This document shows positions 6,101 through 51,030 of a DNA stretch of 64,000 bases, one piece after another (position 1 is the first letter of the stretch; the number at the start of each line of letters is the position of its first letter). A program made the translations under genes and the position numbers. The stretch is from assembly GCA_964234715.1 (NCBI GenBank), contig OZ174282.1. One strand, given 5' to 3'. Under the pieces are notes generated by a model that searched no databases, was not told where the DNA came from, and saw nothing but the letters and a program-made list of their open reading frames with translations. Source of the DNA: Podarcis melisellensis (Eukaryota).

Positions 6101-6964
6101 TCTTTCTCAAGGTCAAGCCAATGAGAAGGCCTCTGAGACTGATTTTAGAGCCATTGGATCATAGGAAGCTGCCTTATACTGAGCCGTATCACTGCCCCAT
6201 ACATCTCAGTGTTGTCTACACTGACTGGTCGCAGCTCTCCAGGGTTTCAAACAGGAAATTTTCTCAGCTCATGTGTGTATGTGCATCAAACAAAACCGAG
6301 ATATTGAATTCATATATGCAGAACATTTCAGCTTCTGCCTTCAGGAGGCTTGAAACATTTTGCTATATGAATTCAGTTTCTCTATTTTGTTAGCACAAAG
6401 AAGGATGAAACACTAGACTTGGAGGCTAAACTTCTCTGTATAAAGTTCCTTATGTGTGAAAAACACATTTTGTCACTATAGATGCAATCCCATGCATACT
6501 ACATGTTAATACATCCTATTAAACCTAATGGGAGCTACTTCCTATTAAACAAAACAAAACAGGCTTGTGCTGCCATTGTTATCCTTTGTATTCAGGAAGC
6601 TATAGTTTCTATGCCAGCTCCTTCCATTTTTCCATGGTGTAGAATCCTAAAAGGAAGTGAATTTCCCTCATTTTTATCCAAATGGAAAACATTTACAATT
6701 AAATTGAGCCCTTAAGTTTAATTGTAGGTTTTAGATCCCATGCGTAGAATAGCCCCTAAATGCAGGGAGTTTTCATACAATCTTGCCTCAAGGAGCATTT
6801 ATGTCCTACAAAAACATGCAGTTTCAGCTCACTGAATATCTAGCTAAGCAGTATTGAAATATTCTACATGGCTCCCTTAAGTGCAAAAACAGACTTACCG
6901 AGATGCTCCCATCTGGACAAAGGAGAAAGACAAGAAGAGCAGTGGTCACAACCTGGAGATGCAT
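125..6964 (-). CDS. Gene B (3' part outside the window): secreted Gly/Leu-rich protein with GGLLG microexons
   Basis: 6899-6964 MHLQVVTTALLVFLLCPDGSIS (signal peptide, ends TCG|GTAAGT); 5706-5717 APQL; 4039-4056 LGGLLG; 2995-3012 GAGSRR; 1598-1615 GGGLLG; 1074-1091 ALLVGN; 935-964 GLTDGLTGGT; 125-142 GGGLLG. All phase 0 with AG acceptors and GTRAGT donors. No stop exon found in the window. Confidence 0.8.
1822..2596 (-). mobile_element. Putative solo LTR inserted in a gene B intron
   Basis: About 775 bp absent from the paralogous repeat unit; starts TGTCG and ends ACAACA; minus-strand AATAAA near 1907-1912. No clean TSD seen. Confidence 0.45.
4652..4721 (+). mobile_element. CR1-type 3' end fragment
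   Basis: GGGTTGGACTCGATGGCCCTTGTGGTCTCTTCCAACTCTATGATTCTA, the typical CR1 tail. Confidence 0.65.
5108..5396 (-). mobile_element. Sauria SINE (internally deleted) with TSD
   Basis: (ACCTTT)n tail on the minus strand, conserved core, and 17-bp direct repeat CCCTCATCCTTACTGTA at 5091-5107 and 5397-5413. Confidence 0.85.
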
Positions 6965-7033
6965 CTTGGCTTTGCGTTGGTGTCTTTCAGGAGTGAAGTC
7001 ACCAAGGTGAAGAATGAGCAGTTTTACCTGCTG

Positions 7034-7041
7034 TATTTATA
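7034..7041 (-). promoter_or_regulatory. TATA box (TATAAATA) of gene B
   Basis: Consensus TATA box about 70 nt upstream of the ATG at 6964 (context GCCAAGATG). Confidence 0.7.
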
Positions 7042-10000
7042 CTATAATTTTGTCCTCAATTTTCAAGCCTGGTTGACCAAATGTAATACCTCTATTGTCA
7101 AGGGAACCTATGACTTTTGTCAATAAGGAAAGGTCAATTCATCATAGCTATCATCACATGGAAAGTAGTGGTTGGTTCCAAACACCAGGGGCCAACTTGG
7201 CAACAAAGAATAGGCGGCATTATTCTTCCTAACTTGGGTGTTAAAATGGCCCAAATTGACCTTTTCTAACTATGTGCAATGAGGGATGTGCCAGAACCTC
7301 TTTGTGACATGGATAATGCCTACATTTCTGAGTATAGTTGAGGAGACCCTTATGAAGATGGAATGAATTTCTGAGGTGGCAATTCTTAAGCAAATTCAAA
7401 GAATAAGGTGGTCTACAAAGCAGTGGGGCAGCCTGGTACACTTGCCCTGGGCCTGCCAGACTTACGCTGTCATGCCAATAACACCTTGTTCCTCCCAGAC
7501 AACCAAGGACTCCCGCCCCAGGTTTTAGACGAGCTCTGCATGAGCCTGTCCCACAGAGTTCAGCAAGTTGCTTAGATATTACTACCTTTACAATTCCAGT
7601 ATTTAATATGTGCAAATGTTTGAAATTCACTACGTTAAATCCCAATCCGAAACAAGGTCGTAAATTTCAAAGTGTAGCCCAGTGGGGCTGAGTCAGAGTT
7701 TTTGGTTCCTATCCTAACCTGCACATCATATCAGCGAGTCAAGGACTGGTTTTATTTAGCCTAAGGATCTTTCGGCATAAATGGGGGATGTCTGCAGTTG
7801 AGTTGAATGTGTATTTGATGCTATTTATATTCCCACTTAAGTAGCACCGTCCACTTGACATCCACTTCAAATGACTTCTATCCTGCTATTTTTTCCCTTT
7901 TAAACATTGATGAATATCACTGATTCAATGCTTGGAGCCAGGGTGCTGTCATCCATTAGAGTTGGCTAGCAGGAATGGTGGTCCCTAGTCATTGCCTTAG
8001 CTGCATGTATACCCACACTGAATTTGGGGAAGTTGAGTTCAAATAATTAAGAATGTTTCAGATCAGACTTGCAAGAGAGTAGAGTTGTAGCCCACTTACT
8101 ATCGTATGTGTCAATTCCACAAGTTGATATTGTTTAAACACTGCTGCAAAAGCAATTTTGATGTGATACACATAACTTCATTATTTATTTGTGCAGTGTT
8201 TTATCAGTCCATTTACAAACCACCACTAAAAAAAAACCCCCAAAATTATGTGTTGTGGCCAATATTAGTCATACTCAGAGTAGACCCACTGAAATTAACT
8301 GACATGGATAATTTAGGTCAATTCATTTAAATGTGTCTACTCTGAGTAAAACCTAGATGGCAATTACCCTTTTTCCCCAAGTATAAACTGTAGTAACAAT
8401 ATTCTTTTCCATCCTTTTTCTATCCCTTGTGCCGTCAGTTTCCTTTCAACAAAAGCAAAAAGTTTCATCAATGAGTAAAAACTGAAGTATGAAGTGTAAT
8501 CTCCACTAAATGTAACTCTCCTAAAAGATTAGACCACATTATAGTGATTCTCAAAAATTTATAGCCACAATATAGTGATTCTGTTTCATGCATTCACACT
8601 TTGCTACACAGTTAGGCCCCTATTTGGGCTTCACAGTCTGGGATATGATAGTGTTGGTGGCAGGGGTCTTACTACACTAGAAAAACAAAACAGCTGGTAA
8701 CTTGTGTTCTGGACGCAGCATGGGATAGATACTATTTTTTTGTTCTAGGTCTGTTCTAGAGTCACAAGTCAGTATGTTGCAACTTTCCTATGATTTTACA
8801 TCACAGAACACCCTCTACCCATCACCTGCAAACCAGCCATTCACCATCTTACGCTTGTCCTTTACCTGACCTTTCTACATATGTTTATGCATACTAATCA
8901 GAACATAACCTGCCAGAACAGCAAAGGGCAAGTAAATGTGACAATCTGGATATTGTCAGTTTTTTATCAGTTGCCTGGGTTATTTTTGGCTATCTGCTGT
9001 TGCCTATGATAGAACAATCTTTCCAGGAACTTGGTGTCTCAGTAGATCCCATTCTTCTGCTTCAGCAATAAGTTTTAGCAGCATTTATTGCAACTGATAA
9101 CAGGCCTTTGATCCAGCTTCTGGCTCCTGAGAAATGGAAGTATGTTCTTTTTTCTATAAACAAAAACAAAACACCTGACCTACACAACCAAGGCACATTG
9201 CAGATTAGCATTTGAATGTCAGAACAAGTTGTCCGGATATCACCTGAGAATGCCTTCTTTCGTGATCAAAGAAGGCTATGTGCCAATGACAGGGTTCCCC
9301 TGCCCCTGCAGTTCATGTGCCTGTGCTCCCTGCATGACAGACACTTTCAACAAGTATCCATAAGCCCTCCAGCTCATACCTATAGGCTACAGAAAGTAGC
9401 ACACACTTTGCATTCAGGTCCTAAATTCAGTTTCCAACATCTCCAGGTAAGGCTGGGAAAAACTCCTATATGAAACCCTAAAGAGCTACCATCAACCAGA
9501 ATATACGGTATTGATAGACCAATGGAATACAACTTCCCATGTTCCTACTGAAGCTTCGAGTTCAAACTGATTCACTTATTATCCACCTGACTGCCTTGTC
9601 ACATACCAGTGCCAGTACACACCAGTGCCAGTACAGGTAAGAATAATATTGCAGTTGGCTATGCCAGGTTTGTCTCTGCTTATCTTTCCGCTTTAGCTAC
9701 AGCAGTTCATTTATTTAAGATAACGTCTCACTTTTACGCATGTGATTTATACCTCTCTGCCTCTCAGTTACAGATCTTTCTTTCATTCCATTTTCCTGTC
9801 TTGATATAAGATGGCTGTCTTCCTTTGTCTTTCTTTCCATTTTCTCATGCTAAGCATTTCTAAAGCTGGTAAGTTGCCTTAAGTAGGCACTCAAGCTGTT
9901 CCACCTTCTTTTTCTTTATCGTGTGAGGGTTTTTTGGGGTGAAGGACCTCTGCCCTACCCTACATGCATTCATTATAAACCCTGAAGGCAGCCTATCATG

Positions 10001-11710
10001 TGTTCATTGTGCTTCTGTGAACATCTGAAAGGGGCCTGAGTTATGCTACAATGTCTTTCTCCTCAAGTGAATCTCTTTTGATTCTTTTATTCATGCTACC
10101 ACACCGTATTGTAGAAATGTATCTGTATGTTTCTACAGTCCATATTTTCTTGTCAATCTATACTTCTACGGCTTCAACTGGCATTTGTTGTATTGGCTAG
10201 CTATTTTATTATTTATTTATTATTACATTTATATTCCATTTTCCCCTAAGTAACTCAAGCTGCCGTACATGGTTCTCCCCTCTTCCTATTCTATCCACAA
10301 ACAACCCTGTGAGGTTGTTTAGGTTAAAAGACAGTGGTTTCGAACACTTGAAATGTTGCAAGGTCTCACACACAGACACACATACCCCACAGCACAATAA
10401 AAATTGCTCCATATTATATACATTGGTACACTTTTATATGTTTCCACATTGAATGCTGTCTGTTCACACCAGTGGGTGGAGCACTTTTTACACTTTACAA
10501 GGTTGGTTTCCTTGCAACTCCAAACCTCCCTACTCTGAAAATGTCTCCACGTGGTTGCCATATTTACAGCTACACCATTATATATCTATCAGGTACAATG
10601 TCCTAAAAGCCTAGGACAGAAAATGTTTTTTTTTAAAAAAAAATAATCTTTGTAAAATGAACATGATTGGATCTCTGCCCAACACATCTTTCATTATACT
10701 TTGAAGAGGCAATAGTGGCTTATCTTAACCAGAGATTATTGGCCTTACATAACTGGAGAAATTTTAAAATTAAAGCAAAGTTTTTGGTGTGAACATACAT
10801 GAGCTAAATGAGGTGGCAGGGGTCACTGCTGCCTCAGTACCGTGTCTGCCAAGGAATTCAACTGACAATGAAATTCTCTCAAGCATTCAGCTGTTCCACC
10901 AATATATTCATTTCACTTCCTACCTCTCAAATGAAATAGTCCTTCTACCCCATAAACATCTTTTAGGATGGTTTAATTTTGAAATGTACAGTTGTATCTA
11001 TGCAGCTGGGTACTTTCATGGTGAAGGAGAAGGTTTGCAACAAGAGCTGGCAAGAACCATAATGTGAAATTATGTTTGTATCTACCTATCCTTACCCCTA
11101 ACAGAACCTAAGATGAGTAACTGAAACAACTACACATTGCTTCCCTATGTACCCCTTCCTCTGTTGTTACCCATGTTAAAGCTTAGATTGCATATCCCTT
11201 GGGGTTGTCTTCCTGCAACTTTCTGCCCTGTCTTCTGAAATGGTTGTGCATATGTATGTTATGCATGGGGCAATGTAGCCATGCTCTTTAAAATATTTAA
11301 CAGATAGATTGGTGAGCATTATCTTAGCTGAATTTTACTTTTGGTCTTTATTGGTAATGGCAGTTTAAATTGTTGTGTTGTGTGCAGAGATAATTAGTGA
11401 CGGGGGTTGGGCTCCACATTCTGTAAATAATAAATAAACAAAACTATGAAAACCAATGGTACTAGAAAAGCAACTGGGCAGTATCTCTCTTTAAAGAAAA
11501 ACATGGTTTTGCATAAGCAAGCCTGTAATTATAGCACAAACATCAATGAAAGTACTTGGGCAGTAATTTCCTGCATTATATGCCACACAATAGAAGCTGA
11601 GATTACTAAACTGAGGTGGAACTGCATGAGAATTGAATGGTGTGGCACCTTCAATGTCCTGTAACTTTAATGGAGTTCGAATCACAGCCCCAGATTTCAA
11701 CACCATAGAG

Positions 11711-16604: not shown

Positions 16605-17840
16605 CTGAGGAAACAAGATACAGGATTGCACTGCACTTTACCTGCATGGCTCTTCTTTTGAAACAGACTTATCTACATTTCCAAGTTACATTTTTTCACA
16701 TATCTGAAGAGACATGGGCATATGTGTTGTAAGATGCATATAAATATTTAGGGAGGCTGGACATAGCAGGAATAGCAGGCTGGTTTCGTGCATACATTTT
16801 TTGTTGCCTGAGGCAGAGCAGCAAATGGAATTGCTCCCCAATTCAAGATTTAAAGTACCCAACGATACCCACCTTAGGTAGAAAAATCATCCTAGTGTTT
16901 CCCTCTCCCTAATTCTGGTCTCTGGGACCAGAACTTGTTATTTTTTAAAAAAAAATAATGGATAAAACAAATGATCCCCAAATCAATACTTCTTCTTTGT
17001 CAATAATTCCTGTGGAAGTCAGTAGCTGGGAATCAGATATAAATTGTGTCTTGACAAGATTCAGAAATATAACTTTGCTATTGCTTTTTATATCATTATC
17101 TATTCAGGTTTGTGGGTGGAAATTAACTAGTGTTACTCTTATACGTATAAATATTTCCCTCTGTGTGTTAAAACATTGCTCTGCACAATGTTTAAGCCCC
17201 ACAGCACCTATGGACATGCAGTAAAAATTCAGGATCAGCAGGCTGTCATCTTGATATCAAACCTGACCCAAGAGGAGATGGATATGTGTAATAATATTAT
17301 TTCCATTAATTTCTTGCCCACCCTTCACCATGAAGTCCCTGGGTGGGTTACCACAACAAAAAATACAATATTTAAAAAGTTACAAGGAAATACAGACAAG
17401 AGAATATGGTACCATAGGTGGATGTTTTCTTATTAGGTTCACAACAGTATAACCCACCAGGTAGCATTTAGGATTCATGCCTAAATGCTTGATAGAAACT
17501 TCTGGTACAGAGAACAAAGTATGGCTAACAACAAATCTATGGTTTCTATTTGTTCTTTGGAGCTACAGCTATCTGAAATATGGGATCATCTTAAAATGGC
17601 ACCGAGAACTGATGCTCTGAACTAAAAGATTATTCTTCAACTCAAGTTTTGAAACATGCATATTGCAAAAAGCCATCTATATTAAGCAGCTGGTATTTCA
17701 CATTTTGCATTCCACTTCTTACATATATTGCCAATAGTCCTTTATACCCACACCCCAAGGTAACCCATATACGAACGTCTTTGGACAAACTAGCATAGTT
17801 TAGTCTCTCTTGGTGCGAAAGCAGCACCCTCTGTACTCAC

Positions 17841-29800: not shown

Positions 29801-29811
29801 CAGTACCAATC

Positions 29812-29863
<52 letters not shown>

Positions 29864-32800
29864 GTTACTCAAACCCTTGGCTCAGGATGAGACACTGAAA
29901 TTATATGAATCTGTTAATATAGAAAGCATTTTCCATATACTGTACTTACTTTCACTCTTTCTACGAGCTCCATCTATAAGGAAAAAGGAATAAATTATTC
30001 AGAGTTTCTTAACTTTGTAAGTGCGAACAAGACATCCTTCTGGGTCTCTTGGTGGGTTTTGTTATCACTAAATATGGTTACCTTCTAGATAGAGGGTCTT
30101 TAGGGATTAGGGGTACTGTATTTCAGCCATCCTACTCCAACGTAGATAACATATCCCGGAAGGCAACACTGAGCAATTACTGAGGAATTCCATTATACAA
30201 TGGGACATTTCAGGATTTCACAGTGGTCTCCAAGTTTTTTAACATGTACAGTAGCTAAGCCCTACTTCTCAGAACAAATTCCTGGGTTTGGAATTACTTA
30301 ACTCTAAATCTGTGTCTTTTGCACCTAGTTCTATTTGGTGGGTCTTGGGATTCTAGCGGAAGCAAAGCCATGTCTGAGTTAGAGGAGGATTCAGATGTAA
30401 TCTCCTCCACCCACCACTTGTAGCCTGAAGTGGGACAGCCCTATTTGATTCCACCGAATGTATAAACTGCCCCAGGGCCGGCGGTGGGAAGAGAGATAAG
30501 GGGTGGTTTGTGACATGATCATATGAGAGCGCTGGAGGTGAAATAGTTAAAGAAGTTACCCAATCAGAACCGGGGGGGGGGCATGTGGAGTCAGAGGAAC
30601 TATAAAACCAGCTCTGGGAGGGGCGAAAGGGGAGTTTGTTGGGAATTGGGTGGTTGGTTGGAGTGGGAGCGAATTGGGATAGAGCCTGTGGGTAAGTTGA
30701 GTTAGTGTAGCGAAATAGGCTGAGTCAGGAACAGTTAGGAGCTAGGAAGACAAGTAAATATCTGAGAGGTGGTTAAGTGAGTGAGAGCAGGTAACGGAAG
30801 TTATAGGTCTGGATAGGCACCCTATGATTGTAATTGACTGATACCATTTATGAAACCACACACTTGTTAAACTGCAATAAATAAACAGAAGTTTATGTTC
30901 CAATTTAACCCTGACTGGACTCAGTATTGTACCAGGTAGGGCCTGGGTGGTGGCAGTGAGAAATAAAGTGGTGGCACAGGGATCAATAGACGGTGAAACG
31001 TCCAGGGACCCTGTGTGATCGCCACATGGTTTATATCCACTTATATTACATTTTTATCTCACTTTTCTTCAATGAAGAAGGTTCATTGCATCAGCCCTCT
31101 AAGGTAGACCAGGCTAAGAGAGAAGTCATATAGGGAGTACTGTGGCTCAGATTTGGATCCCGGTCATCTCACCAGGTCTTGACATGATGCCTGGTATACC
31201 AGACTTTAAATATATACAGTATATATATCTTAGCCCAGTAGCTGTCTTTACAACTTTTCATTCCGCTTAACACGTCTCAGTATTGGGCACTAAGATTATA
31301 TGAAACAACCAGAGAAGAAAATCCTTTCCATTTACTTACCGGCATCTCGAATAATCTTTTCATCTGGAGGGGAAAGAATGTAGGTTATTCAAAGAGGAGA
31401 GCTTCCAGACATGGGGTTAAGATGGTAAACTCACATCCAGAACCAAAAATGCAGCATGGGGACCTGCCCCACCCACCTACTCTGTGTTCTACAGCCAGGC
31501 CATTCATAACTTTAGGCAAAGTGAGGTAGCCACTTCAGACGTCAGGTCTTGGGTGTCACGAAAAGGTAGAAATTGTTGGTAGAGGAGGGAGAGACACACA
31601 CCTGGTGCTCTGCCTCAGCCAGGAAAATGTCTATAGCAAGCCCTGCCTAAGGCCCTGATCCAGCAGCTCGTACAGCAAGGGCTGCAATGCATATCTGCAA
31701 GCCAGGTGGGATCTTCAACAATATGAGAAAGGAGAACCTCAGTTTAGCCTCTCTATCTCCAAAGCTGCCAGTTGGCTCTAAGGATAAATATATCAAGGAA
31801 GCTACATGTGTGGAATCAGCCGTGTATGTTGTGCACAGTACCCATTCCCACGTAAGTATTGCATGCTTCCACACACTGAGCTATCAAGGTGCCCCTCCTA
31901 GGACATCCCTGGAGGAAGGCAGCGGTCAGTTCCCCCATTTACAATTTCAGCAGAAGCGTGTTGGGGGTCAGGGAGACCCCATGTCTGTCTCGAAAACTCT
32001 CCCCAAGCAGCCCTGCAAGAATAACGATGAGCTTTATTTAAACTGTGGCAATCGTGAAAACAAATAGCACCATGACCCACCAGAGAAGGAAGTAACAACT
32101 CCTGCTTTGTACATGTTAGCGACTTAAAATGCAACAAGGTTATTCTCACCAACCCACTGCAACAAGGTTATTCTCACCAACCCACTGTGTTTCAAGTCAC
32201 ATTAGCACGTTGCTGTACATGCTAAAGAGGAGGCCGGGATGTCTTCACCCAATGCACATTCTTTGTTTGGCATCCCTGCTGCTTTAAGCCCACTACCTCA
32301 CTCCTATTCACGAAGCTGTCACCTGTGCATTCACAACAGCTGCCCCAAAATCTAAACAGCCCAGCTTAGGTGCAAAAGGCATGTGGCTGCCATTTTCAAA
32401 TCGGATAGAAGCTGATTTGAGAGGAGGTGCGTCAAATGGCAATATATCTCAAAGAAGCTACAGGACAGATAGGGGGATGTGGCTAATGTCAAAAACCAGC
32501 AGCGGGGGTACAATCAAGCCAGAGTAAATGGCAATGTGTACACAGCCCAGGTTTCTCTCTTATGGCTTTTTAAATGGGAATTTGTCACACATCATTGTGT
32601 CTTAAGGTATAGGTGCGTATTCTGTGCCTGTCTCATCTGCCAACAGACCACTAGCCTAGAAAATTTTCTTCTGGGACGCTCCGAAGGTAAAATTCTACAC
32701 CCAATGTCTTTTTGGACTAAGCTACATTGAACTCAGTGGGGCTTACTTTATTTATCTATTTATTGCATATGCATCCTGAGAGGGAATACGTAGGATTCCA

Positions 32801-35800
32801 TTGTTAGAGTGCAATTGGTTCGAATCTCCGCAATGCAGTGAGCGCCCGTTGCTCTGTCCCAGCTCCTGCCAACCTAGCAGTTCGAAAGCACGCCAGTGCA
32901 AGTAGATAAATAGGTACTGCTGCGGCAGGAAAGTAAACGGTGTTTCCGTGCGCTCTGGTTTCCATCACGGTGTTCCGTTGCACCAGAAGCGGTTTAGTCA
33001 TGCTGGCCACATGACCCAGAAAGCTGTCTGTGGACAAATGCCAGGTCCTTCGGCTTGAAAGTGAGATGAGCGCCGCAACCCCATAGTCGCCTTTGACTGG
33101 ACCTAACTGTCCAGGGATCCTTTAACTTTACCTTTTACCTATAAGCACATATAACTTGGGAGCTGCATTGAAATCAAGGGGACTGGGATATAAGTGTCAA
33201 CTTAATGCAGAAATCACAATGCTAGGTACATTTTAGAAAAAAATAAAAACAAAACATTTTACCCAATTTGGGCTGTCGTCAGTCTACAAAGAAAGAAAGA
33301 AAGAAAGAAGTTAATTGATATTGTTGCTCTCCACATCAAAGATGAAACTGTTTAAGTGTACAGATATTTGAGCACACTCTTAGTTATTGGAAGCAACCCC
33401 CAATAAAATTAAAAGAGCTTATTATGGTCATAGAGCTGAGCCAGAATTCCTCAGAAGATTCTTTTTCCAAGAACATTTTTGAGATTTATTTTTTTCTCAC
33501 CCACCCAAGCTCAGAAAAGTAGGCCATTTTGCAGAATTTTCTGCACACACTTTATCAAGTGTTAAGAGGCCATCTGCACACAACTCTAATTTAGCATCTA
33601 AGAAAGGCCTACAAAAGTAAGTCCAACAACTTCAATCTCACCCTATTGTATTTATTTTATTGTTTCGCCTGTTACTAGCCTGATACGATCTTTGCGTATT
33701 CTCTTTAGTATGTGCTCTTTTACCTTCCAAAATTACAGTTTCAGGGGGGGTTTGTTTTAAAAAAGTGGGGCACAATTAACTCGACCAATATACAGTGATA
33801 CCTCAGGTTAAGTACTTAATTCGTTCAGAAGGTCCGTACTTAACCTGAAACTGTTCTTAATTTGAAGCACCACTTTAGCTAATGGGGCCTCCTGCTGCCG
33901 CCGCGCCGTCGGAGCACAATTTCTGTTCTCATCCTGAAGCAAAGTTCTTAACCTGAAGCACTATTTCAGGGTTAGCGGAGTCTGTAACCTGAAGCGTGTG
34001 TAACCTGAAGCATATGTAACCCGAGGTACCAGTGTAGTGGCAATATGTTGCATACAGTGTCTTTTAAAACTACAGAATTTGTATTTTTGCTGTGTTGTTG
34101 CCTTTCAATCTTCTGTTTGAGGGACTCTCAAACCAGTCCAGTCCAGTTTAAAGAAAAAGTACAGTGGTGCCTCGCAAGACGAAATTAATTCGTTCCCGAG
34201 TTGCTTCGTCTTGTGTTTTTTTCGTTTTGCGGAGTGCGGATTCCCTGGGTATCACCGGCTTTAAGAAAAAGGAAGCAAACCCGCAAGACGTTTTCGCCTT
34301 GCGAAGCAAGCCCATAGGGAAAATCGTCTTGCGAAGCAACTCCAGAAACGAAAAACCCTTTCGTCTTGCGCGTTTTTCATCTAGCGAGGCATTCGTCTTG
34401 CGAGGTACCACTGTACTTCTAAAAGGAAAAACAGATATTTTGAAGTAGCCCACAGACATCAGACTGAGCAGACACACAGGCCACCTGGCCACAATCTTCC
34501 CAAGATTGTGATCTCTAATTTCCAACTCTACAAATAAATTAGAGAAATGATCTCTAATTTCCAACTGTACAAATAAATTATGCAGGTCTGTATCATCTTT
34601 TTTTGTGATATGTAAGTAGCAACCTTAGCACAAGGCATTGTACCCAGGATTATACATGCTTAACTTAGATCCAGTAATTGAAGAGGGAAAGAAAGGACAC
34701 AATAATTCTCTGTGTGTGTCCATGTGCATGAATATGAAAGGGTTGGATCATAAGCTCACATATTCAAGGTGCTGGCCCAAAGAAAGGACAAGGAGAAGAG
34801 AATACAATCAAAGAAACGAAACCTGTCATACCTGTTTCCTTCTGCCGAACCAACCAAACTACAAGAAGGAAGGGGGGGGGGAATAGATGTTATTTTTTTC
34901 CTATTGGCTTCTGCATGAGAAATTAAACTGATACAACCTTTGCACATTTCCCCCTGCATGTGCACACTTTCTCCTCCAAAACATACAGTTTCACAACCAG
35001 AAAAAAACGAGACTTATCACAGTCACTTGGCTTAAACTGCTGAAATGAAGAAACCTGAAGCTGGGAATGGGGGGGGGGGAGGCAGGGATGGATTTGTGAG
35101 TGGAAGGATGGTGAGCGCAGTTATACTCAGAACCGGGAGGAGCCAGAAGTGGAGGCAGAACAGTGCTTACCGGACCTCCTGCCAATGGCATTGCTGTGTC
35201 TTACCAGGAGGGAGAGGGTTGAGGTGGCAGGGAGGTTGGCAGGAGCTCCAGGTTTGCTCAGCTGGTTAGTTTGCATCACACAGTTCTCCCCTCTCCCTTG
35301 CAGTCTCCAAGTAAGGTGCAAGTACACTGGCAATAAGAGGTCAGGTAAGTACCGTATTTTTTGCTCTATAAGACTCACTTTTTCCCTCCTAAAAAGTAAG
35401 GGGAAATGTGTGTGCGTCTTATGGAGCGAATGCAGGCTGTGCAGCTATCCCAGAAGCCAGAACAGAAAGAGGGATTGCTGCTTTCACTGCGCAGCGATCC
35501 CTCTTGCTGTTCTGGCTTCTGAGATTCAGAATATTTTTTTTCTTGTTTTCCTCCTCCAAAAACTAGGTGCGTCTTGTGGTCTGGTGCGTCTTATAGAGCA
35601 AAAAATATGGTACCCTTGCCTCTCTGCACAGACCACTACTGCTCAGAACAAATTCTGAGATGTGGAATTACAGCCGTACCTTGCAAGTCTGTTCGACTTT
35701 CAAAACATTCGGAAACCGAAGTGTGGCTTCTGATTGGCTGCAGGAAGCTCCTGCAGCCAATCGGAAGCTGTGGAAGCCCCATCGGACATTCAGCTTCCCA

Positions 35801-38800: not shown

Positions 38801-41800
38801 TACCTTTCACAATTGAGAGAAATGAGACTTCTGTCGCTCATCACCACCCGTGGTCAGGGCCAAAACCAAAATAAAATAGACATTATTCATTCCTCTTGGC
38901 TTCCATGTGATAAATGGCACAGAATCTCAGGCTCATAAACACATATCCCCAGCAAGAATTGCCTGAGCATCTGAGGGACGTAGTCCCAAACAAGACCGGA
39001 TAGCTGAGCTGGTTAGAGCGTGGTGCTGAAAGTGCCAAGGTTGCAAGTTTGATCCCCGTATGGGACAGCATTTCAGGGGATTGGATGATCCTAGGGGTCT
39101 CTTCCAGCTCTACAATTCTATGATTCTAAGACATGATATTAATTGCACAAATGCAATTAATGCCTGTGGCCTTGATCCCGCTGAATGTTTAAGCAGGCCC
39201 TGAGTAAAAAGCAATGGTTTGTGTACACTTATGTTCCATCTTCAGCTAACCCCTTTTTCACTAGATACTGAGATTATACAAAATAGCCAAAGAGAGTAAA
39301 AAGCTGCTTCCATATACTTACTTGTTTTCTGCTGCCTCCAAATATTCCTGCAAGCTAGAAGGGAAAGGGACATCAGTTATTCAAAGAGACTGGATCTTCT
39401 TGTCCAGCTCCAGCAAAAGAAGAAGCTGAATTCAGGCTCCTCCTGAAAGGAGCCAGTTGGCTCAATGGCCAGAGCTCTCGTGAGCGCTATATGTGTACAA
39501 ATCCAACACCTGAACTGGCCAGACAGCGTTGGTTCACAGCACCAATTTCCACATGAATATCACATGGTTCCACATTCACCTAGCAAGTGAATGCAGAGGC
39601 GAGGGCAGGGGGTCAGTTAGCCCATTTACAATGTCAGCGGAAGGGTCCTGGGGTCAGCTAGATCCCAGATGTAAATGCATTTCTTCATGTTTGTTCCAAG
39701 AACCCGTCCCAAAATCGCACCCTTGCAAGAACAATAGCACAAAACTGTGACGATCATTAAAACAGTTAATTCCACAGCCCAGCAAAAAGGAAGTCACAAC
39801 TAAGACCAAAGGACTCTTAGCTATTCGTATATAGAGCTTTTTCAATGGGGATTCGTCACAAATTATTGTTGGGTTGTACCCGTGGGTCTTTTATGCGTGT
39901 ACCTACTCCATCTCTTGCCCCAAAATAGACCCCTAGTCCTCATACTTCCCTCTTTCCTTTGATGCTCTGTGGGTGATATCCTGTACTCAGTTTCCTGGGA
40001 ACAAGGTCCATAGAATTCAACAGGTCTTACATCTGAATAGGCACGCACAGGATTGTGCATTGGGACGTATGTTTAGCCTAGAATCCTATGGACACTGACC
40101 TGAGTATAAGCTCCACTGAAAACAATGGGACTTAAGCTGTGTGCAAACTATACCTTTAAAGCACACTGAACACACCATAGTTTGCCGTTCACAGAAATGC
40201 AATTCCCAGCAAGGCCTTAACAAAGTACAGTGCTCAGAATTCCTTGAGGAAAAGAAGGTGCTTTGAATGGGCTTTAAAGGTACAGTGTGCAGACAGCCTT
40301 GCTTCTGAGGTTATGCATAGGACTGCATTGTTAGAGCACAATTCTAAGCATGGGAGTTGAATTAGAATCAAGGGGACCACAATCTTAGTGCCAGCTTGAT
40401 ACAGAAATGACAACCTTAATTGAACAAAATGTATTTTACCAGTCCTGGGCTTGACTGCTTCGAAGAACTCTACAAAAAAGGGGGGAAATGCAAATGTTCT
40501 TTGATCTTGTTTGTTTCAATATGAGAAAAGAACCTGCCTAGGCACCCAGACCCCTTAGCACACACTGATTCTTAAGCACACAATGGGCTTTTTAGTTTCA
40601 AGTTTAGGTCGTAGAACTGGGACAGAATATATCAGAAGATGCATTTTCTGAAAATATGTCTGAGGTGCATTATTTTCTCCCCCTTCCCCCTTGAAAAAAG
40701 TGTCAGCCACCCCCCCCCCAAAAAAAATATTCCATTTGCACACAGCTCCAGAAGCAGCGGCCAAATCTAAGGAAGGCTGCAAGTCCTCCAGCCACATCAA
40801 GATTCCCATTCTATTATTTTTCATTTAATGTTTAGTCCCTTACCAGCCCGATAAAGTCTTAAGACATTTTACTTATATGCGCAATTTTTCCTCCCCAAGT
40901 TACAGCTTTCACAATTGGAGAAATGAGATTTATACTCACTTGTCTTCTGCCGCCAAACTCGTTCTACAAATAATAGCAGTATTAGTAGTAGTAGTAGTCA
41001 TGTAAAAATTCATCATTTGTTTCTGTTGGCTTCACAAGAGAAATGAGAAGCTCAGGCTCATACACACACCCCCCCAGAAAGAATTGCTTGTGGACTCTAA
41101 GGGCCTTGGCCAGAGACTGGACAAAATACTAATTGCACAAATTCACTTGAAGCCCATGGTCTTTTCTTATGTAAATAACAGCTCCAGGGAATCCTGAACA
41201 GCAGTACTAAAAGGGGATGGTTTCCATTCACTTATATTCCATTTCAACTGGGAAACACTGGCCTGTGAGCGCTCCAGTTGGAGAACAGCCTTTACCAAAG
41301 GTGTCATGAGTATTGAAGATGCTCAAAAACAGGACGAAAGGGAGAAACGTGCTAAGAGGAAGGCACGCTTGGCAAACCTTCACCATGATCAACTCCCAAC
41401 CGGAAACCTATACAGTGGTACCTCAGGTTAAGTACTTAATTCGTTCTGGAGGTCCATTCTTAACCTGAAACTGTTCTTAACCTGAAGCACCACTTCAGCT
41501 AATGGGGCCTCTTGCTGCTTCCGCGTCGCCGGAGCACAATTTCTGTTCTCATCCTGAAGCAAAGTTCTTAACCTGAAGCACTATTTCTGGGTTAGAAACA
41601 TACCTGAAGCGTATGTAACCTGAAGAGTATGTAACCTGAGGTACCACTGTATCCTTACTGTGGAAGGACATGTAGATCCAGGATTGGCCTCCACAGTCAC
41701 TTACGGACTCACTTTTAAAACCATGTTTATGGAAGACAATCTTACTCGGCTACGAGTGATTGCAGAAGAAGAAGAAGAAGGAGGAGGAGGAGGAGGAGGA

Positions 41801-44979: not shown

Positions 44980-45028
<49 letters not shown>

Positions 45029-48000
45029 TAAATTTGTATGCCACCCTATGCTTGCAAGTCTCAGGGCGGTTCTCAACATAAAATCACAATATAAAAACAC
45101 AAAACACATAATCAAAATAAAAAGAAGAACAACCCAATAATCTCCCCTCCCTGACACATTTTAAAAGGAAGGCTCCCCTGGCACCGTTATTAATATCACA
45201 CAGGTGACATTTGAGAACTGATAGCAAAGAGAGGGAAGACCACCTCGCAAGTCTGCTGCAGCTGCACTTCCTGACCACCCTGAACCATGAACTACTAAAC
45301 TGGGCCACATAATCTGATGGCCCATATGAAAGAACTTAGAAGAGTTTCTCATACTTACTGGGGGAGGTTGAGGCTGCCAAGGTTGGGCTTGGACACCAAG
45401 ATAGGCCTGAAAAAGACCAAGATACGTAAGCAAGTTGCTCAGTCCTGTCTCTTGCCCACCAGACATCACCACTACAGAAGCACAATGGAAACCAAGCAGA
45501 ACCACAGCAAGTATTGACGAGCCAAGTCCAGGTCCTTAAAAAACTGGGGCCAGCCACTGTCAGCACTGGCACATCCATACAATGACAGGGAGCCGCAAAC
45601 AGCTATAATTCAGCATGAAGTGTGCTCTGGAGCCAGGGTTGGCCCAAGACATTTCGCCACCTGAGCCAAACCACAAGATGGCAACCCTTTGGGCCACCGC
45701 CATAATTCTGGAAAAGATGAAGACGCACAGTTCTGGCCTGACACACATCTCCATAAACTGCTCCTGAATACCAGTTGCTGGAAACTATGGGAGGGAAGAG
45801 GGCTCTTGAGCTCAGATCCTGCTTGTAGGTTTCCCACAGGCATCTGGTGAGAACAGGATGCTGGAGTAGAGGGGCAGGCTCTTCCCAGGGTCTTCTTGTT
45901 AGGGACCTTGGAGAGGAATTGGTGCTCTTCTAGACAGATAGACTCTGCGCCTAGGGAGTGTGGTGTTAGTCCTTTAAGAGGTTTATTATATTTCAAATGG
46001 AAGCCTGCCGTGCAGTTTATGCAGGAGGCTGTTGCTCAGCTAGAGGCAGACTGCATGTGTGAGTTATGCGTGAGGCAGCTAGCACAGAACAGGGCCGTGT
46101 TTAGATAAACATTATAACCACCCTTTGGTTGTTAAATAAATGAAACAACACTATACGGAGGAAATGTGACATCTGTCTACTGGTGCATCTGAGATAACAT
46201 CATGGGCAGAACTTTGGTAACTGTAACTTGAAGAACTTGTGCTTGAGCTTGCTTTTCCCTCATCCCTCCCCAGTCCTCTTTCCTCATGTGCCATGGCTTT
46301 TTATTTTTTATTTTTTTATATATATAAATGTTATTGGTTTTTTAACATATCATTTTCAACAGTAATTAAACATACTTTTACATCTTATTCAATTTTTTTT
46401 GACTTCCATCAGTCCTGTCTGAAAATTTTCCAATCTAATCTCTTAGTATGCATTTCTTACTTTCCCTGTTACATTTCAAACTCATAACCAATATCTCTAT
46501 CTTTTTCTACTTTGTAACACTTCATATATTTCTCCTTACAAAACTTCTTGTAGTCCTACTAGCGTAATTTGTTGATTACAGTTGCTCTTCAAATAATTCA
46601 TCTACTTCTTCCCATCTTCTGTAAATCTCTGGTCTTTTTAGATTGTCTTTAGATTGCCATGTCTTTTTAGATTGTGAGTCTGGGGGCAAGGATTGCCTTT
46701 GAAGGAGATTTCTGCACGTCACTCTTTTTGACTTAAAGCTGGGGGTATCAGTGCCTTGGATACATTGTAAATTCACCAAATAAGCAGGGAAACCTGGAGC
46801 ACCTGTGTGGGTTTCGTTTTGGCCATGCCCACCACTGGCATGCGGTCCTCAGAGGGCTGATGAACAGGGAATGTGGCCCTCACACGCAAAAAGGTCTGTG
46901 AACTCTGTTTTAAGCATCCTTACATAGTTCCGCTCCATTTAAAATGAGTTTCCAAGCTTAATTCAAAGTGCTACTCTTATCCTTAAAAGTGCTAACCCAA
47001 ATACCTGCTTGCCTGCCTTCTCTTGTATCAACTGAGATTGTCACCTTAGGCGTTTCTCCGGACAACCCCTCCATCTGAAGTGTGGTGGGTGGAGACCAGA
47101 GAGAGAACCTTTTTGATGGTGACTCCCTGCCTTCTCCAGGGAAGCCCTCCTGGTGCCTTCATTACCATTATTACCAAAAACTCTGAAGAACTAAGAGAGC
47201 GAAGAGAGGGATACAAGTGAAGGCTGCCTCAGAGTCCGCTCCAGCTGATTTCTCAATGCTCAGTTTCTGAGCCATGTACTACTAAGTGATATCTAAACCA
47301 AGCCGCATAGTCTAACACCCCATATCAAAGAACCTAGAATCTTCCAAAGCATAGTTTCTCATACTTACTGGGGGAGGTTGAGGCTGCCAAGGTTGGGCTT
47401 GGACACCGAGATAGGCCTGAAAAAGACCAAGATACGTAAGCAAGTTGTTCCGTTCTGTCTCTTGCCCACCAGACATCACCACTGCAGAAGCACAATGAAA
47501 CCAAGCAGAACCACAGCACGTATTGACAGGCCAAGTCCAGGTCCTTAAAAAACTGGGGCCAGCCACTGTCTGGCGCATCCATGCAATGACAGGGAGCCGC
47601 AAACAGCTATAATTGAGCATGAAGTGCGCTCTGGAGCCAGGGTCGGCCCAAGACATTTTGCCACCAGAGCCAAACCACAAAATGGCCCACCAGGGAAGAA
47701 GGGGTGGGTGAAGAGCGACATGACAAGCAAGGGAGAAATAAAGATCTACATCAGGAACAAGAGGGGAGTAAAGATTGGGAAGGAGGTGGGGAATCAAATC
47801 AGCCTTGGGAAAGGTCGTTCTCCAGGTTCCCCCTCCATCTGCAGTGTGGTGGCTGGAGGTCAGAGAGAAAACCTTTTCAGTAGCTATCAGAAGGTGTATA
47901 AACTGAGCGAAATTGTCTGATACCCTGAAGCGTCCAAGGTAGCGTTTCTCATACTTACCGAATTTTGGCCATCGTAAGGACCCTGAAAAAGATTGAGATG

Positions 48001-48083
48001 CATAGCTTATTTGTCACACTCACATCTTCACAATGAAATTACAGTGATGCCAAGCAGAACCACCAAGTGAAGACGAGAGAGAC

Positions 48084-48159
<76 letters not shown>

Positions 48160-50950
48160 TTTTCAGTGGTGGCTCCCTGTCTCAGAATGCCCTCCCTGTT
48201 CAAATATTATTCAAAAAATTTTTTTGCATAAACGTGCATCCTCAACATTACAAAATTAAGGCTGCATAAACGTACATCCCCAACACCACTCAAGAACTCT
48301 GGAAACTGTAATTTACCCTCCACAGAGCTACAATTCCCAGAACCCAGAACATACTTCAATTCCCAAGATTTGGGGGTTGTGTGAGCTTTAAATTTGCTTT
48401 ATATGCATGGTGTATAAGCAATCTAAGAGAACAGAATGAAGACAGAGACCACCTCAGACCTTGCTCCAGCTGCACCCTCTAATAAACACCCTCCCCTGAA
48501 TAAGGTACTACCAATTTATATATTGAGCTATGTAGCTTAATACCCCATAGCACAGTCACAATAACCCGAAGAAAACTTTCTCATACTTACTGGAGGAGGA
48601 GGCTGAGGCTGAGGTGGGGGAGGTACATTTGGGCCCGAATAAGTAACCTGTAAAAGATCAAGAGAGAAAGGTGGTTCAGTCCTTTTTGTTGCCCATCTCA
48701 CATCCTCACAACAAAACCCAAAATCAGTGTGGGTAAGCTTGCTGCTGAGATTTGCAGGAAATTCCATCCCTATCTATAGCCCTTGGCTGCCTCCACGTGG
48801 AAATTTATTTGCACATAAACTGATCGTTCCAGGAAAAGCCCTTTCCAGGAGGAAAATAAAAGCTTAGGCAGGTCCAGTGCTTTTGATAGGATCCTGTAAG
48901 CTGATAATCCCTGCCTGGGGTGTGAAGAGGTGGAATGCCTTCTTTTAAAATCAAAATATAAAATGAATTTTATTTTTCATGAAAACCCACAAGCGGGGCA
49001 TGAGTGCAACACTTCCAGCCCACTCTTCTCCCCAGCATGAGGATGCTTCACTCTGTGCATAGCTGAAGCATGGAATTTGCTAGCACAGAATGTAGTGCTG
49101 GTTAGAAGCTTGGATGGCTTTAAAAGGGGAGTTAGACAAATTCGTGGAGGGCCAAGGCTTCTGTGACTACTAGCCACAAGGGCTGTGTACTGCCTTCAGT
49201 TGTTGGGCATCACAAGTATGGAGAGTTGCTGTTGTACTCAATGCGCTGCTTTGGAGCTTCTCAAAGACATCTGATCTGCCACTGTGAGAACAGGATGCTG
49301 GAGTAGATGGGTCTTTGGCTGATCAAGTAAGACCCTGGAAGAAGATGGCTAATTCTAGCCCAGAACAGGACTGGTCCTGTTAAACAAGTGAGGGTGTTTT
49401 GTCGCAGATCCTACTCGCGTAGCATCCTTTTTGAGAGAAAGCATAACAAAAGCAGATGGACAAAATGTGTCGTACTTACGGAGGCACCAAAACCAGGATT
49501 CCACTGTGATAACAAAACAATTGAAACGATGCTGTTAGTTTCCATGAATTTAATTTGAAATAGACTCTGGGACATAAGCCATTCTTTGCAAGCAGGATTC
49601 ACAGTACGATCCTATTCATTCCTATTTGGAGTCAAAAGTAACTTCCATTGAGTTCAATGGGACTTACGCCCTGGTAAGTGCACATAGGAGTTCTGCCTTA
49701 GTTACTCTCTTATATCCGAGTACGAAAAGGTTTGTTGTGTTCGCTGGAAGCACTGTATGTGGACTCAAGCCCTGTCCGCAATCGGGAGACATTAACAAAC
49801 GGGAAAACAAGGTTTTAACCCAAAGCTCCCCACTTCTATCTGAAGAAGTGTGCATGCACACGAAAGCTCATACCAAGAACTAACTTAGTTGGTCTTTAAG
49901 GTGCTATTGGAAGGATTTTTTTTTTGTTTTGACTATGGCAGACCAACACGGCTACCTATCTGTAACTCCCCACTTCAGACAGTCACCTTCCATGTTGCAA
50001 GGAGTGGGGACGAAATTCAGCTCAGTTGTATTTAAAAGCAAACCATCCTAATCTGCCCTTTCCAAAACAATGCGCAAACTGAAATGCAGTCACCATTCCA
50101 AATTACCAGCCAGGGAATGTGTACAAACATGCATGCACAATACCAGGGTAAAGTGTGAGCATTAGTGAAAATAGCATACAGAATGTATTACATTAAGGTG
50201 TACTGCCTTGCAGAAATGTGTCTATTAGGGGAAATTGCATGCAAACATGTAAAATCTAGGAGGAATTCGTAACGAAATGCTGATGAATTTTCAGAATTAC
50301 ATCTTTCTTTAATGCAATCTACTTGGAGAACTGAGCTAAAGAGAAATGAGAAACTGGGATAAGCCAACTAACACAGCAATTGCGGGGGGGGGTGTGTGTG
50401 CAGAGTTAGCACACTGGCCCCCACTGCTTCTTCTTACAAGCAAAATGCCCTCTCAAAACTCTCTGGTTTTTATAAACAGTGCCTTGACTTCCATCACTGA
50501 AGGAAGGCACAGGTATCTACTAATTATTTTGGCAAACTGTTTGTTCGCTATGTATTTGGACACTTCTTAAGCTACCATAACTAAATCTTGCATGATGGTT
50601 CCTGAGATCAAGGAGCAGGTTTTCATCTATGTTTGCACCAGATGACATTTTGAATCAAGAGGGCAAACTGAACCTTTAAAAACTGTCCTGATTTTAACCA
50701 CTAGTTTCATTTTTTTATTTTTTTATAATTCCCGAGCAATGCTGGATAAAGGGCTTCTGGTCAATAAATAACATGACACTTTTGATTCACATTGGTTTAG
50801 GTCCCCCACTCCACCTCCCCCCACTAGCATCCAATTAAAAGCTGATGCTGCATTTCTCCTAGAAGTCCGTTTCCATCTCACCTGTGCATCCGTTTCTCTT
50901 GCACAAAGTGCAGAGATTAAAAGAACGGCGGCTACAACCGGGAGCTTCAT
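17873..50950 (-). CDS. Gene A: secreted Pro/Gln/Gly/Tyr-rich protein encoded by 42 coding exons, mostly phase-0 microexons (~468 aa if all are included)
   Basis: Exons read manually; each internal exon has a pyrimidine tract+AG, a GT donor and a length divisible by 3. In transcript order: 50882-50950 MKLPVVAAVLLISALCARETDAQ; 49480-49503 WNPGFGAS; 48591-48647 VTYSGPNVPPPPQPQPPPP; 47959-47982 GPYDGQNS; 47369-47416 and 45359-45406 AYLGVQAQPWQPQPPP; 44523-44555 QVGLYVGSPGP; 43182-43262 QGSGYSGSPGARPYPPPPPPQNGYPGS; 42465-42494 DDGGQSVDAW; 42132-42158 WEELINSVE; 40940-40963 NEFGGRRQ; 40440-40469 SSSKQSSPGL; 39322-39354 LAGIFGGSRKQ; 38315-38341 SSSNRNQGW; 36743-36760 LQDFTP; 33263-33283 TDDSPNW; 31340-31363 MKRLFEMP; 29950-29973 MELVERVK; 28913-28942 EAFSRKNSQN; 27023-27049 NNRYQWPFQ; 25943-25969 SNAGSYQQQ; 20 Pro-rich exons between 25165 and 19849; 17841-17881 AP-stop. 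No in-frame stop occurs before the last coding exon. Confidence 0.85.
19849..25165 (-). CDS. Gene A Pro-rich microexon array (20 exons, 30-51 nt)
   Basis: 25115-25165 PPQQPQQNPGAAVYLYA; 24990-25028 PAPPPPNQGNGQP; 24879-24911 GSRPYPGYGPP; 24583-24615 PPPPYGPYGPP; 24465-24494 PPPPSGNDQP; 23779-23811 SSVSFGIYGQP; 23658-23693 PPPPPNQGNGQP; 23541-23573 GPQPYPAYGQP; 23241-23273 PPPQYGGYGPP; 23123-23155 PPPPPSGNDQP; 21971-22003 SSVSVGIYGPQ; 21533-21565 DPQPYQGYGQP; 21248-21277 PSPAGENQQP; 21128-21160 PLLPYGGYGPP; 21010-21042 PPPPPSGNDQP; 20309-20341 TSVSPGINAPP; 20195-20224 and 20081-20110 PPPPPGGSQP; 19966-19995 PPPPPGGSPS; 19849-19881 PPPPPFESQEP. Donors are mostly GTGAGTAT/GTAAGTAT; acceptors TTTCAG/TTCCAG/TTTTAG-like. 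Confidence 0.87.
21596..21818. mobile_element. Tc1/mariner-pogo-type MITE
   Basis: TA-CAGTGGTACCTCTGGTTACGAA ... TTCGTAACCAGAGTACCAC inverted termini; right end damaged. Confidence 0.75.
22447..22670. mobile_element. Tc1/mariner-pogo-type MITE (diverged)
   Basis: TACAGAGGAACCTC...AAGGTTCCACTATA; absent from the paralogous intron copies at ~20560 and ~24255. Confidence 0.65.
26217..26458. mobile_element. Tc1/mariner-pogo-type MITE (same family as 33793 and 41413)
   Basis: Internal TAACCTGAAGC repeats; ends GAGGTACCACTG-TA. Confidence 0.75.
26808..26936 (+). mobile_element. Penelope-like retroelement terminal fragment
   Basis: CTGAAGAAGTGTGCATGCACACGAAAGCTCATACC...CAACACGGCTACC; a near-identical copy lies at 49838-49966. 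Family call from memory. Confidence 0.55.
27240..27920 (+). mobile_element. Degraded L2 LINE 3' region
   Basis: Frameshifted homology to the reverse complement of 62100-62700; ends in AATAAATAA. Confidence 0.6.
29815..29861. repeat. (CA)n microsatellite
   Basis: Direct observation. Confidence 0.95.
30509..31026 (+). mobile_element. Solo LTR in a gene A intron
   Basis: TGTG...CACA termini, 5-bp TSD TGGTT (30504-30508 and 31027-31031), internal CCAAT, TATAAAA (30601) and AATAAA (~30876). Confidence 0.8.
32812..33140 (+). mobile_element. Sauria SINE (5' truncated)
   Basis: Core CTCCTGCCAACCTAGCAGTTCGAAAGCA...GTAGATAAATAGGTAC and TTTACCT tail. Confidence 0.85.
33793..34034. mobile_element. Tc1/mariner-pogo-type MITE
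   Basis: TA-flanked; CAGTGATACCTCAGGTTA...TAACCCGAGGTACCAGTG. Confidence 0.8.
34162..34413. mobile_element. Tc1/mariner-pogo-type MITE
   Basis: TA TSD; TIRs CAGTGGTGCCTCGCAAGACGAA / TTCGTCTTGCGAGGTACCACTG. Confidence 0.85.
35352..35610. mobile_element. Tc1/mariner-type MITE
   Basis: TA TSD; TIRs CCGTATTTTTTGCTCTATAAGAC / GTCTTATAGAGCAAAAAATATGG. Confidence 0.8.
35671..35897. mobile_element. Tc1/mariner-pogo-type MITE
   Basis: TA-CAGCCGTACCTTG...CAAGGCACGACTG-TA; a related copy lies at ~53874-54101. Confidence 0.75.
37275..37513 (-). mobile_element. tRNA-derived MIR/CORE-like squamate SINE
   Basis: Close paralogue at 42768-43012; tRNA-like head (GTGGTTAAGAG...GGTTC) and (TTC)n tail on the minus strand. 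Confidence 0.7.
38996..39128 (+). mobile_element. tRNA-derived SINE with CR1-like tail
   Basis: A box TAGCTGAGCTGGTTAGAGC, B box GTTTGATCCC, then CTTCCAGCTCTACAATTCTATGATTCTA. Confidence 0.65.
41248..41820 (+). mobile_element. RTE-clade LINE 3' fragment interrupted by a MITE (41413-41649)
   Basis: Degenerate RTE C-terminal coding sequence (WETLACERSSWR..., then a Cys/His motif ending RIGLHSHLRTH), (GAA)n/(GGA)n tail; nested TA-flanked CAGTGGTACCTC...GAGGTACCACTG element. Confidence 0.7.
42768..43012 (-). mobile_element. tRNA-derived MIR/CORE-like squamate SINE
   Basis: Paralogue of 37275-37513. Confidence 0.7.
44981..45028. repeat. (TTA)n microsatellite at an L2-like tail
   Basis: Direct observation; the adjacent 45030-45165 resembles the reverse complement of 15530-15675. 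Confidence 0.85.
45343..47690. repeat. Direct duplication (~45343-45690 and ~47353-47690) carrying gene A exons 5 and 6
   Basis: Highly similar sequence at ~2010-bp offset; the two exons differ by one synonymous base (CTT/CTC). Confidence 0.9.
48080..48157. repeat. (GA)n microsatellite
   Basis: Direct observation. Confidence 0.95.
49838..49966 (+). mobile_element. Penelope-like retroelement terminal fragment
   Basis: Near-identical to 26808-26936. Confidence 0.55.
50882..50950 (-). CDS. Gene A exon 1: signal peptide MKLPVVAAVLLISALCARETDAQ
   Basis: Basic N-terminus, hydrophobic core and small-residue cleavage region; AAAATG start context; ends CAG|GTGAGA (phase 0). Confidence 0.88.
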
Positions 50951-51022
50951 TTTAGCCCGGGATCAGGCTTCCGTCCCGGGTGCGAAATCGTTCAAAGGTG
51001 TGAACTGTGGCTCGGAAGCTGT

Positions 51023-51030
51023 TATTTATT
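51023..51030 (-). promoter_or_regulatory. TATA-like box (AATAAATA) of gene A
   Basis: About 73 nt upstream of the ATG, the same spacing as the TATAAATA of gene B. Confidence 0.5.

Follow-up and report, generated by a model that had tools for sequence, protein, structure and literature searches.

We analyzed a 64,000-nucleotide stretch of Podarcis melisellensis DNA (assembly GCA_964234715.1, contig OZ174282.1; hereafter the window), the minus strand of which carries two genes, termed A and B, with start codons at 50950 and 6964, respectively. Sequence comparisons make it probable that these genes are tandem, same-strand paralogues, which inherited one promoter and signal-peptide module, expanded their phase-0 microexons separately and would encode secreted low-complexity products. 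The pair, which lies in the neighborhood of the gene encoding upstream stimulatory factor 2 (USF2) and is largely unannotated, is well supported as a real set of paralogous secreted microexon genes. It may offer a clear vertebrate case of the way in which genes for secreted low-complexity proteins arise, the promoter and signal module being duplicated and the microexons multiplying independently in each copy. Coordinates are those of the window, and features lie on its minus strand unless stated otherwise.

Promoter and signal exon of genes A and B

Gene A opens with a 23-codon exon (50950-50882) encoding the signal peptide MKLPVVAAVLLISALCARETDAQ, which ends in phase 0 at the donor gtgaga and is 100% identical to residues 1-23 of the Podarcis raffonei protein XP_053255620.1. 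The first exon of gene B (6964-6899) spans 22 codons, encodes the signal peptide MHLQVVTTALLVFLLCPDGSIS and likewise ends in phase 0, at the donor gtaagt. A TATA-like box, AATAAATA at 51030-51023 in gene A and TATAAATA at 7041-7034 in gene B, is separated from the ATG by 72 nt and 69 nt, respectively. These values match the original prediction, made from the sequence alone, of two same-strand genes with a TATA-like box about 70-73 nt 5' of the ATG and a first exon of 22-23 codons ending in phase 0, and the signal pattern that it had proposed, M-K/H-L-P/Q-V-V-x3-L-L-x3-L-C, fits both peptides exactly. Judging from the -3/-1 rule, the gene A signal peptide is likely cleaved at A|Q at the end of exon 1, where an A-x-A|Q pattern occurs in four gene A orthologues.

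The block upstream of gene A (51168-50951) contains, in order, TGACCTTTCC, GATAAG, CAAT, TTTGGGCAG..GGCTTG and the AATAAATA box, and is conserved in Sceloporus, Pantherophis, Phrynocephalus and Podarcis raffonei (alignment, blastn blocks). The corresponding block of gene B (7136-6965) is collinear with it, with TGACCTTTCC, CAAT, TTTGGTCA..GGCTTG and the TATAAATA box, and the five aligned sequences display a single block order, TGACCTTTC, CAAT, TTTGGnCA..GGCTTG and the TATA-like box. The gene A first exons of Sceloporus (MELPFVMVILMASVICTGAQ), Pantherophis (MKLSFAGAALLISVLCTLAQ) and Phrynocephalus (MKLLFGAAVLVVSALCVDAQ) all lie beside the gene C8orf90 and are accompanied by the promoter.

We built DNA profiles of the gene A promoter and exon 1 exclusively from squamates other than the window itself and ran them with nhmmer along both window strands. 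A two-species profile (Sceloporus and Pantherophis) retrieved gene A with an E-value of 9e-38 and gene B (7136-6913) with an E-value of 1.4e-6, the next match being at E 7.6; addition of Phrynocephalus moved these values to 5e-50, 1.3e-7 and 0.44, respectively. A promoter-only profile of the same three squamates also detected both genes (E 8e-36 for gene A and 0.0026 for gene B). Recovery of gene B by a profile of outside species (E 1.3e-7) agrees with the earlier proposal of a common ancestral promoter and signal exon.

The resemblance between the two first exons, which might have been no closer than that of random signal peptides, exceeds composition-matched chance. In register, 33 of the first 48 nucleotides are identical (69%), as compared with 18.1 +/- 2.9 for codon shuffles of the gene B exon, and 33 identities were reached in 0 of 200,000 shuffles. 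The encoded peptides agree at 8 of 16 residues (p = 7e-4). Paralogy of genes A and B, with an ancestral promoter and signal exon in common, is supported by these comparisons. Beyond exon 1, the only similarity between the DNA of the two genes is one interspersed repeat family; the two arrays are unlike each other and each has internal duplications of its own, as expected from the predicted independent expansion of repeat exons. The further paralogues that had been envisaged did not materialize, neither the window nor the fetched flanks containing a third copy.

Microexon arrays

Both genes consist of short open exons that are preceded by long pyrimidine tracts and were read upstream from strong GTRAGTAT-type donors. 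This donor sequence, which had been said to end most exons, occurs at 29 of the 38 gene A introns and six of the seven gene B introns; window-wide, the minus strand has 37 copies and the plus strand two, with a chance expectation of ~2 per strand. Among strong acceptor-donor pairs collected on the minus strand between 17 and 51 kb with their length left unconstrained, 32 of 34 span a multiple of three, and the plus strand yields one such pair. Acceptor and donor matrices trained on the evident exons were then run along the minus strand; this position weight matrix (PWM) scan recovered the evident exons together with two additional ones in gene A (23811-23779 and 23693-23658).

The gene A model comprises 39 exons and 441 residues, and a local check showed that the joined frame is open for 441 codons up to a TAA at 17875-17873. 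Its internal exons measure 18-81 nt (median 33) and are all in phase 0. The mature part, which starts with QWNPGFGASVTYSGP, contains 31% Pro, 14% Gly, 11% Gln, 8% Ser and 6% Tyr, and is devoid of Cys.

A search with the stop-free stretch that begins with exon 8 (43262-42903; candidates of 66-210 amino acids) retrieved a single protein, XP_053255620.1, and nothing from assembled sequencing runs. This entry, the 169-residue uncharacterized protein LOC128419218 of Podarcis raffonei, corresponds to the spliced product of gene A exons 1-11. Its tblastn alignment, combined with the splice sites, places exons 2-6 at 49503-49480, 48647-48591, 47982-47959, 47416-47369 and 45406-45359, and exons 7-11 at 44555-44523, 43262-43182, 42494-42465, 42158-42132 and 40963-40940. 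These ten exons encode the Pro/Gln/Gly/Tyr-rich N-terminal part and the beginning of a module lacking this Pro richness; the exon at 42494-42465 (DDGGQSVDAW, donor gtaaat) was absent from the initial model and was revealed by the Podarcis raffonei protein. The non-Pro module continues with central microexons at 39354-39322, 36760-36743, 31363-31340, 29973-29950 and 28942-28913, identified by splice-site reading and the PWM scan.

It is followed by a Pro-rich array of 21 exons of 27-51 nt (25969-19849), with products such as PPPPPGGSQP, PPPPYGPYGPP and GPQPYPAYGQP. Many of the introns measure 84-88 nt, giving a period of 114-118 bp on which higher-order cassettes are superimposed: Tandem Repeats Finder reports a period of 114 with 4.4 copies, and in self-blast comparisons the 114-118-bp units are ~83% identical and the cassettes 85-92% identical. 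The last coding exons, assigned by splice-site reading, lie at 17980-17957 (QLHDDFFP) and 17881-17873 (Ala-Pro-TAA). The stop-bearing exon extends to 17841 (17881-17841) and ends at a strong donor at 17840, 32 nt past the stop codon, which suggests that the gene A 3' untranslated region contains an intron. A distance this short between stop and donor falls under the ~50 nt usually taken as the limit for nonsense-mediated decay.

Of gene B, which continues past the window start, seven good exons are present. Splice-site reading and the PWM scan place the six microexons following exon 1 at 5717-5706 (APQL), 4056-4039 (LGGLLG), 3012-2995 (GAGSRR), 1615-1598 (GGGLLG), 964-935 (GLTDGLTGGT) and 142-125 (GGGLLG). 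They measure 12-30 nt and are of a Gly/Leu type, the predicted mature N-terminus being APQLLGGLLG. Self-blast revealed a 1.47-kb tandem unit, with 97% identity between 1-348 and 1474-1820. Copies of the GGLLG-type exon that are 16 nt long and appear to have a 2-nt loss in common are present at 784-769 and ~3655-3640; they are likely decayed exons, since splicing them in would shift the frame.

The available comparison with Podarcis raffonei, in which the locus is 92-97% identical to the window (mostly 93-95%), covers 14 gene A exons. All 14 are open in that species, and they differ at 13 synonymous and 12 non-synonymous codons, a rough dN/dS near 0.3 that indicates moderate constraint on gene A exons.

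Proposed origin of the two genes

We propose that each gene inherited a module made of a TATA promoter with ordered upstream blocks and a signal-only first exon ending in phase 0. Transcription would start shortly 3' of the TATA-like box, which by its position would leave a 5' untranslated region of ~45-50 nt. Both arrays grew by duplication of exon-plus-intron units, as their internal repeats show, and repeated unequal crossing-over of such units would have built the body of each gene from phase-0 microexons. Because all internal exons are multiples of three, these units could be added, dropped or skipped with the frame left intact. By what is generally known of splicing, the near-consensus GTRAGTAT donors and long pyrimidine tracts would permit recognition of exons of 18-33 nt and of introns of 84-88 nt. 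The products are predicted to be secreted, disordered, low-complexity proteins, and that of gene A, which is Gln/Tyr-rich and Cys-free, would be suited to being cross-linked or to serving as a coating.

Chromosomal neighborhood

On the far side of gene A, the plus strand encodes a homologue of C8orf90, the main coding exon of which (59422-60306) is an open frame of 294 codons with 107 matches, the best named one being to Sceloporus (77%). A conserved plus-strand block upstream of it (57024-57316) corresponds to where the Sceloporus gene starts, and the G+C content is highest at 58-60 kb. In Sceloporus, Pantherophis, Phrynocephalus and alligator, the gene after C8orf90 encodes a helix-loop-helix protein with a first exon reading MDMLDPGLD; in turtle, the exons of this gene match vertebrate proteins named USF2. 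USF2 is thus the next gene but one from gene A in other squamates. The position of the A and B pair, adjoining C8orf90 and USF2, is conserved in Lacertidae, Iguania and snakes. Searches of Pfam with the C8orf90 exon and other open reading frames returned nothing beyond a reverse transcriptase at 62663-63436; the C8orf90 exon had no match in NCBIfam, the USF2 exon stretches had none in NCBIfam or among solved structures, and the literature yielded no paper printing the USF2 N-terminus.

C8orf90 itself seems to have relocated in mammals, as it lies beside USF2 in squamates and alligator and at 8q24.3 in human (PMC11395840). In the turtle Malaclemys, USF2 (positions 1-9510 of the fetched stretch, minus strand) is arranged head-to-head with C8orf90, whereas squamates and alligator have it after C8orf90 on one strand, a contrast that suggests that a local inversion took place in one of the lineages.

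Possible relation to the mammalian SBSN-DMKN-KRTDAP cluster

The order of genes on mouse chromosome 7 is Gapdhs, Sbsn, Dmkn, Krtdap, Ffar2, Ffar3, Ffar1, Cd22, Mag, Hamp2, Hamp and Usf2, followed past Usf2 by Lsr, Fam187b, Fxyd5, Fxyd7 and Fxyd1, with Krtdap ~155 kb from Usf2 (PMC12847941). The C8orf90/USF2 flank therefore places the A and B pair in the block that holds mouse Sbsn-Dmkn-Krtdap, and not in the locus of the secretory calcium-binding phosphoproteins (SCPPs). Two sets of flanking genes had been proposed as landmarks: SPARCL1/SPP1, expected for an SCPP locus, do not flank the pair, and GAPDHS, TMEM147 and FFAR2, expected for the skin cluster, were not seen in the window.

[quoted passage not shown] Like the window genes, they encode N-terminal signal peptides and low-complexity secreted products. 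In mouse they occupy one chromosomal block together with Usf2 (PMC12847941), and human SBSN, too, begins with MHL (PMC7831088), as the A and B signal pattern allows. For DMKN, 25 exons with three start and two termination sites are reported (PMC3053396), to which the division of gene A into two RefSeq models, described below, offers a parallel.

Descent of the pair from the ancestral locus of SBSN-DMKN-KRTDAP, with gene A as a dermokine-like member, is in our estimation close to an even call, falling slightly on the doubtful side: synteny and gene design speak for it, and the lack of a sequence signal and the different orientation speak against it. More tentatively still, A and B could be the overlooked sauropsid counterpart of the mammalian genes, the cluster dating back to the amniote ancestor and having grown by copying of the module while the bodies diverged through phase-0 microexons.

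Several observations weigh against our reading of the locus, in its paralogy as well as in its mammalian connection. A cross-species profile restricted to exon 1 gives gene B a non-significant E-value of 9.5, though in register with the ATG. Identity to Podarcis raffonei is 95.4% in gene A exons, barely above the 94.4% of flanking intron, and RefSeq divides gene A into two models (169 and 184 amino acids) in that species. The profile of promoter and exon 1 finds no match within 10 kb of C8orf90, a short reach, in turtle, alligator or gecko. XP_053255620.1, which represents gene A exons 1-11, has no match in Pfam, and phmmer against 1.84 billion representatives returned only the protein itself and one spurious repeat protein. 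The expected landmarks GAPDHS, TMEM147 and FFAR2 are missing from the window, as noted above, and the A and B pair is on the 5' side of USF2 and faces away from it, whereas the mouse skin cluster is on the 3' side of Usf2 and faces it, a difference in side and orientation that requires at least one rearrangement.

An alternative is a squamate-specific family that has no common descent with SBSN, DMKN and KRTDAP and whose proximity to USF2 reflects coincidence or rearrangement, a reading we regard as possible but short of probable. It draws on the failure of XP_053255620.1 to match named families, on the placement and direction of the pair with respect to USF2, unlike those in mouse, and on the module being unseen around turtle, alligator and gecko C8orf90, to which may be added that Ensembl lists SBSN orthologues in 0 of 19 sauropsids, a review terming the gene probably mammal-specific (PMC7831088). 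On the other hand, the skin-cluster genes are the only tandem, same-direction, signal-exon-first genes for low-complexity secreted proteins in the mammalian USF2 block, and fast-evolving low-complexity proteins are expected to evade sequence searches. A literature search turned up no work on reptilian KRTDAP, DMKN or SBSN.

The two sets of genes also differ in their products, which are rich in Pro/Gln/Tyr or Gly/Leu for A and B and in Gly/Ser or Gly/His for the mammalian cluster; in their exons, which are far smaller and more numerous in A and B than in the skin-cluster genes, SBSN having five (PMC7831088); and in their lack of detectable sequence similarity, besides the opposite side and orientation with respect to USF2. 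If descent from the skin-cluster locus is correct, differentiating keratinocytes would secrete the gene A product, genes termed mammal-specific (PMC7831088) would have a reptile counterpart, and lizards would allow tests of how this component of the amniote skin barrier originated.

An F-L-N-W-type motif, as in DMKN and KRTDAP, had no match in the window genes. In the gene A orthologue of Sceloporus, a small hydrophobic exon, VSFFNWLP (minus-strand donor 848 of the fetched stretch), follows the Pro-rich part, and the Phrynocephalus orthologue has the small hydrophobic exons FDIFGWVG and NLLESIFSRL, also past this part (donors 2654 and 1719 of the fetched stretch). The Sceloporus peptide recalls the F-I-N-W of the human dermokine peptide LGFINWDAINK, printed in a preprint, a likeness too weak to count.

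One transcription unit or two

Annotation misses most of the locus: in a related species, only gene A exons 1-11 are annotated, as an uncharacterized protein, and what remains has been either separated from them or left out. The 169-residue RefSeq model closes in a short terminal exon that corresponds to ~40616-40572 of the window, and the second Podarcis raffonei model, of 184 residues, begins at the ATG of the gene A exon at 31363-31340. The locus might accordingly comprise two genes, one for a 169-residue secreted protein ending near 40572 and another for a signal-less protein starting at the 31363 ATG, an arrangement that we consider unlikely. RefSeq does list two genes, the second start (30017 of the fetched Podarcis raffonei stretch) maps to 31363, and the acceptor-flanked terminal exon (FYDLNLKLKSPLCA, followed by a stop codon) is present at ~40616-40572. 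The exon at 31363, however, has an ordinary internal acceptor. Two exons with strong splice sites, 39354-39322 and 36760-36743, lie between the models, are included in neither and remain open and in frame in Podarcis raffonei, at ~22080 and ~24700 of the fetched stretch. One intronic 13-mer, CTCTTTGAATAAC, precedes exons to either side of the split as well as these two unannotated exons: exact copies lie 21-22 nt from the acceptors of exons 42158, 39354 and 31363, and a copy with two mismatches lies 26 nt before exon 36760. Furthermore, there is no AATAAA within ~270 nt past the RefSeq stop, the promoter-module profile finds no second module, and the two forms could coexist as isoforms, as they do in DMKN.

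We conclude that gene A is probably one array, transcribed as a single unit with isoforms, because of the normal acceptor at 31363, the common 13-mer, the two unannotated open exons and the missing second promoter module.

Other families and analogous systems

SCPP genes have a non-coding exon 1 and a signal peptide in exon 2, followed by an SxE phosphorylation motif. Membership of A and B in this family (of the enamel, milk and saliva type), a relationship raised by the original prediction, is very improbable. The two genes do recall the enamel matrix proteins, caseins and salivary proline-rich proteins, being secreted, Pro/Gln-rich and predicted to be disordered, with phase-0 introns throughout, small exons duplicated in tandem and duplication of the gene itself. 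Nevertheless, their signal exon abuts a TATA promoter conserved in four species and in the paralogue, and hence is the first exon (predicted start); no SxE motif is found in the mature N-termini QWNPGFGASVTYSGP (A) and APQLLGGLLG (B); and the flank consists of C8orf90 and then USF2 instead of SPARCL1 or SPP1. Three of the four defining features thus fail (exon-1 structure, SxE and locus), phase-0 introns being the feature in agreement, and we rejected SCPP membership.

The penultimate gene A exon encodes QLHDDFFP, the HDDFFP of which resembles the FXYD motif of FXYD5. Identity of gene A with an FXYD5-like gene, suggested also by the FXYD genes, which have small exons and lie 5' of USF2 in mammals (mouse Fxyd5, Fxyd7 and Fxyd1; PMC12847941), is the least credible of the readings, as the frame stops two codons past the motif-like exon and a six-frame scan of the window detected neither an exon-like F-x-Y-D nor an exon with LRxxG plus a membrane segment, the features of Pfam ATP1G1_PLM_MAT8.

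The design of A and B has analogues outside vertebrates. Schistosoma microexon genes combine a signal peptide with miniature exons in the same manner. The KQY-type effector families of the pea aphid couple a highly conserved signal-peptide coding region, common to their members, to divergent bodies of miniature exons (PMC7495047). These invertebrate effector families belong to unrelated organisms and have unrelated sequences, making the analogy one of architecture, and in A and B the promoter is common as well.

Repeats in the window

The reverse-transcriptase fragment mentioned above (Pfam RVT_1, E 1e-29; 62663-63436, minus strand) adjoins a tRNA-like element on the plus strand (63444-63504), which is the sole Rfam match. 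Interspersed repeats of ~200-370 bp, 79-85% identical and present in both orientations, were detected at 5201-5400, 32816-33142, 51345-51746, 52863-53237, 54573-54764 and 55431-55720, and their copies cluster between gene A and C8orf90.

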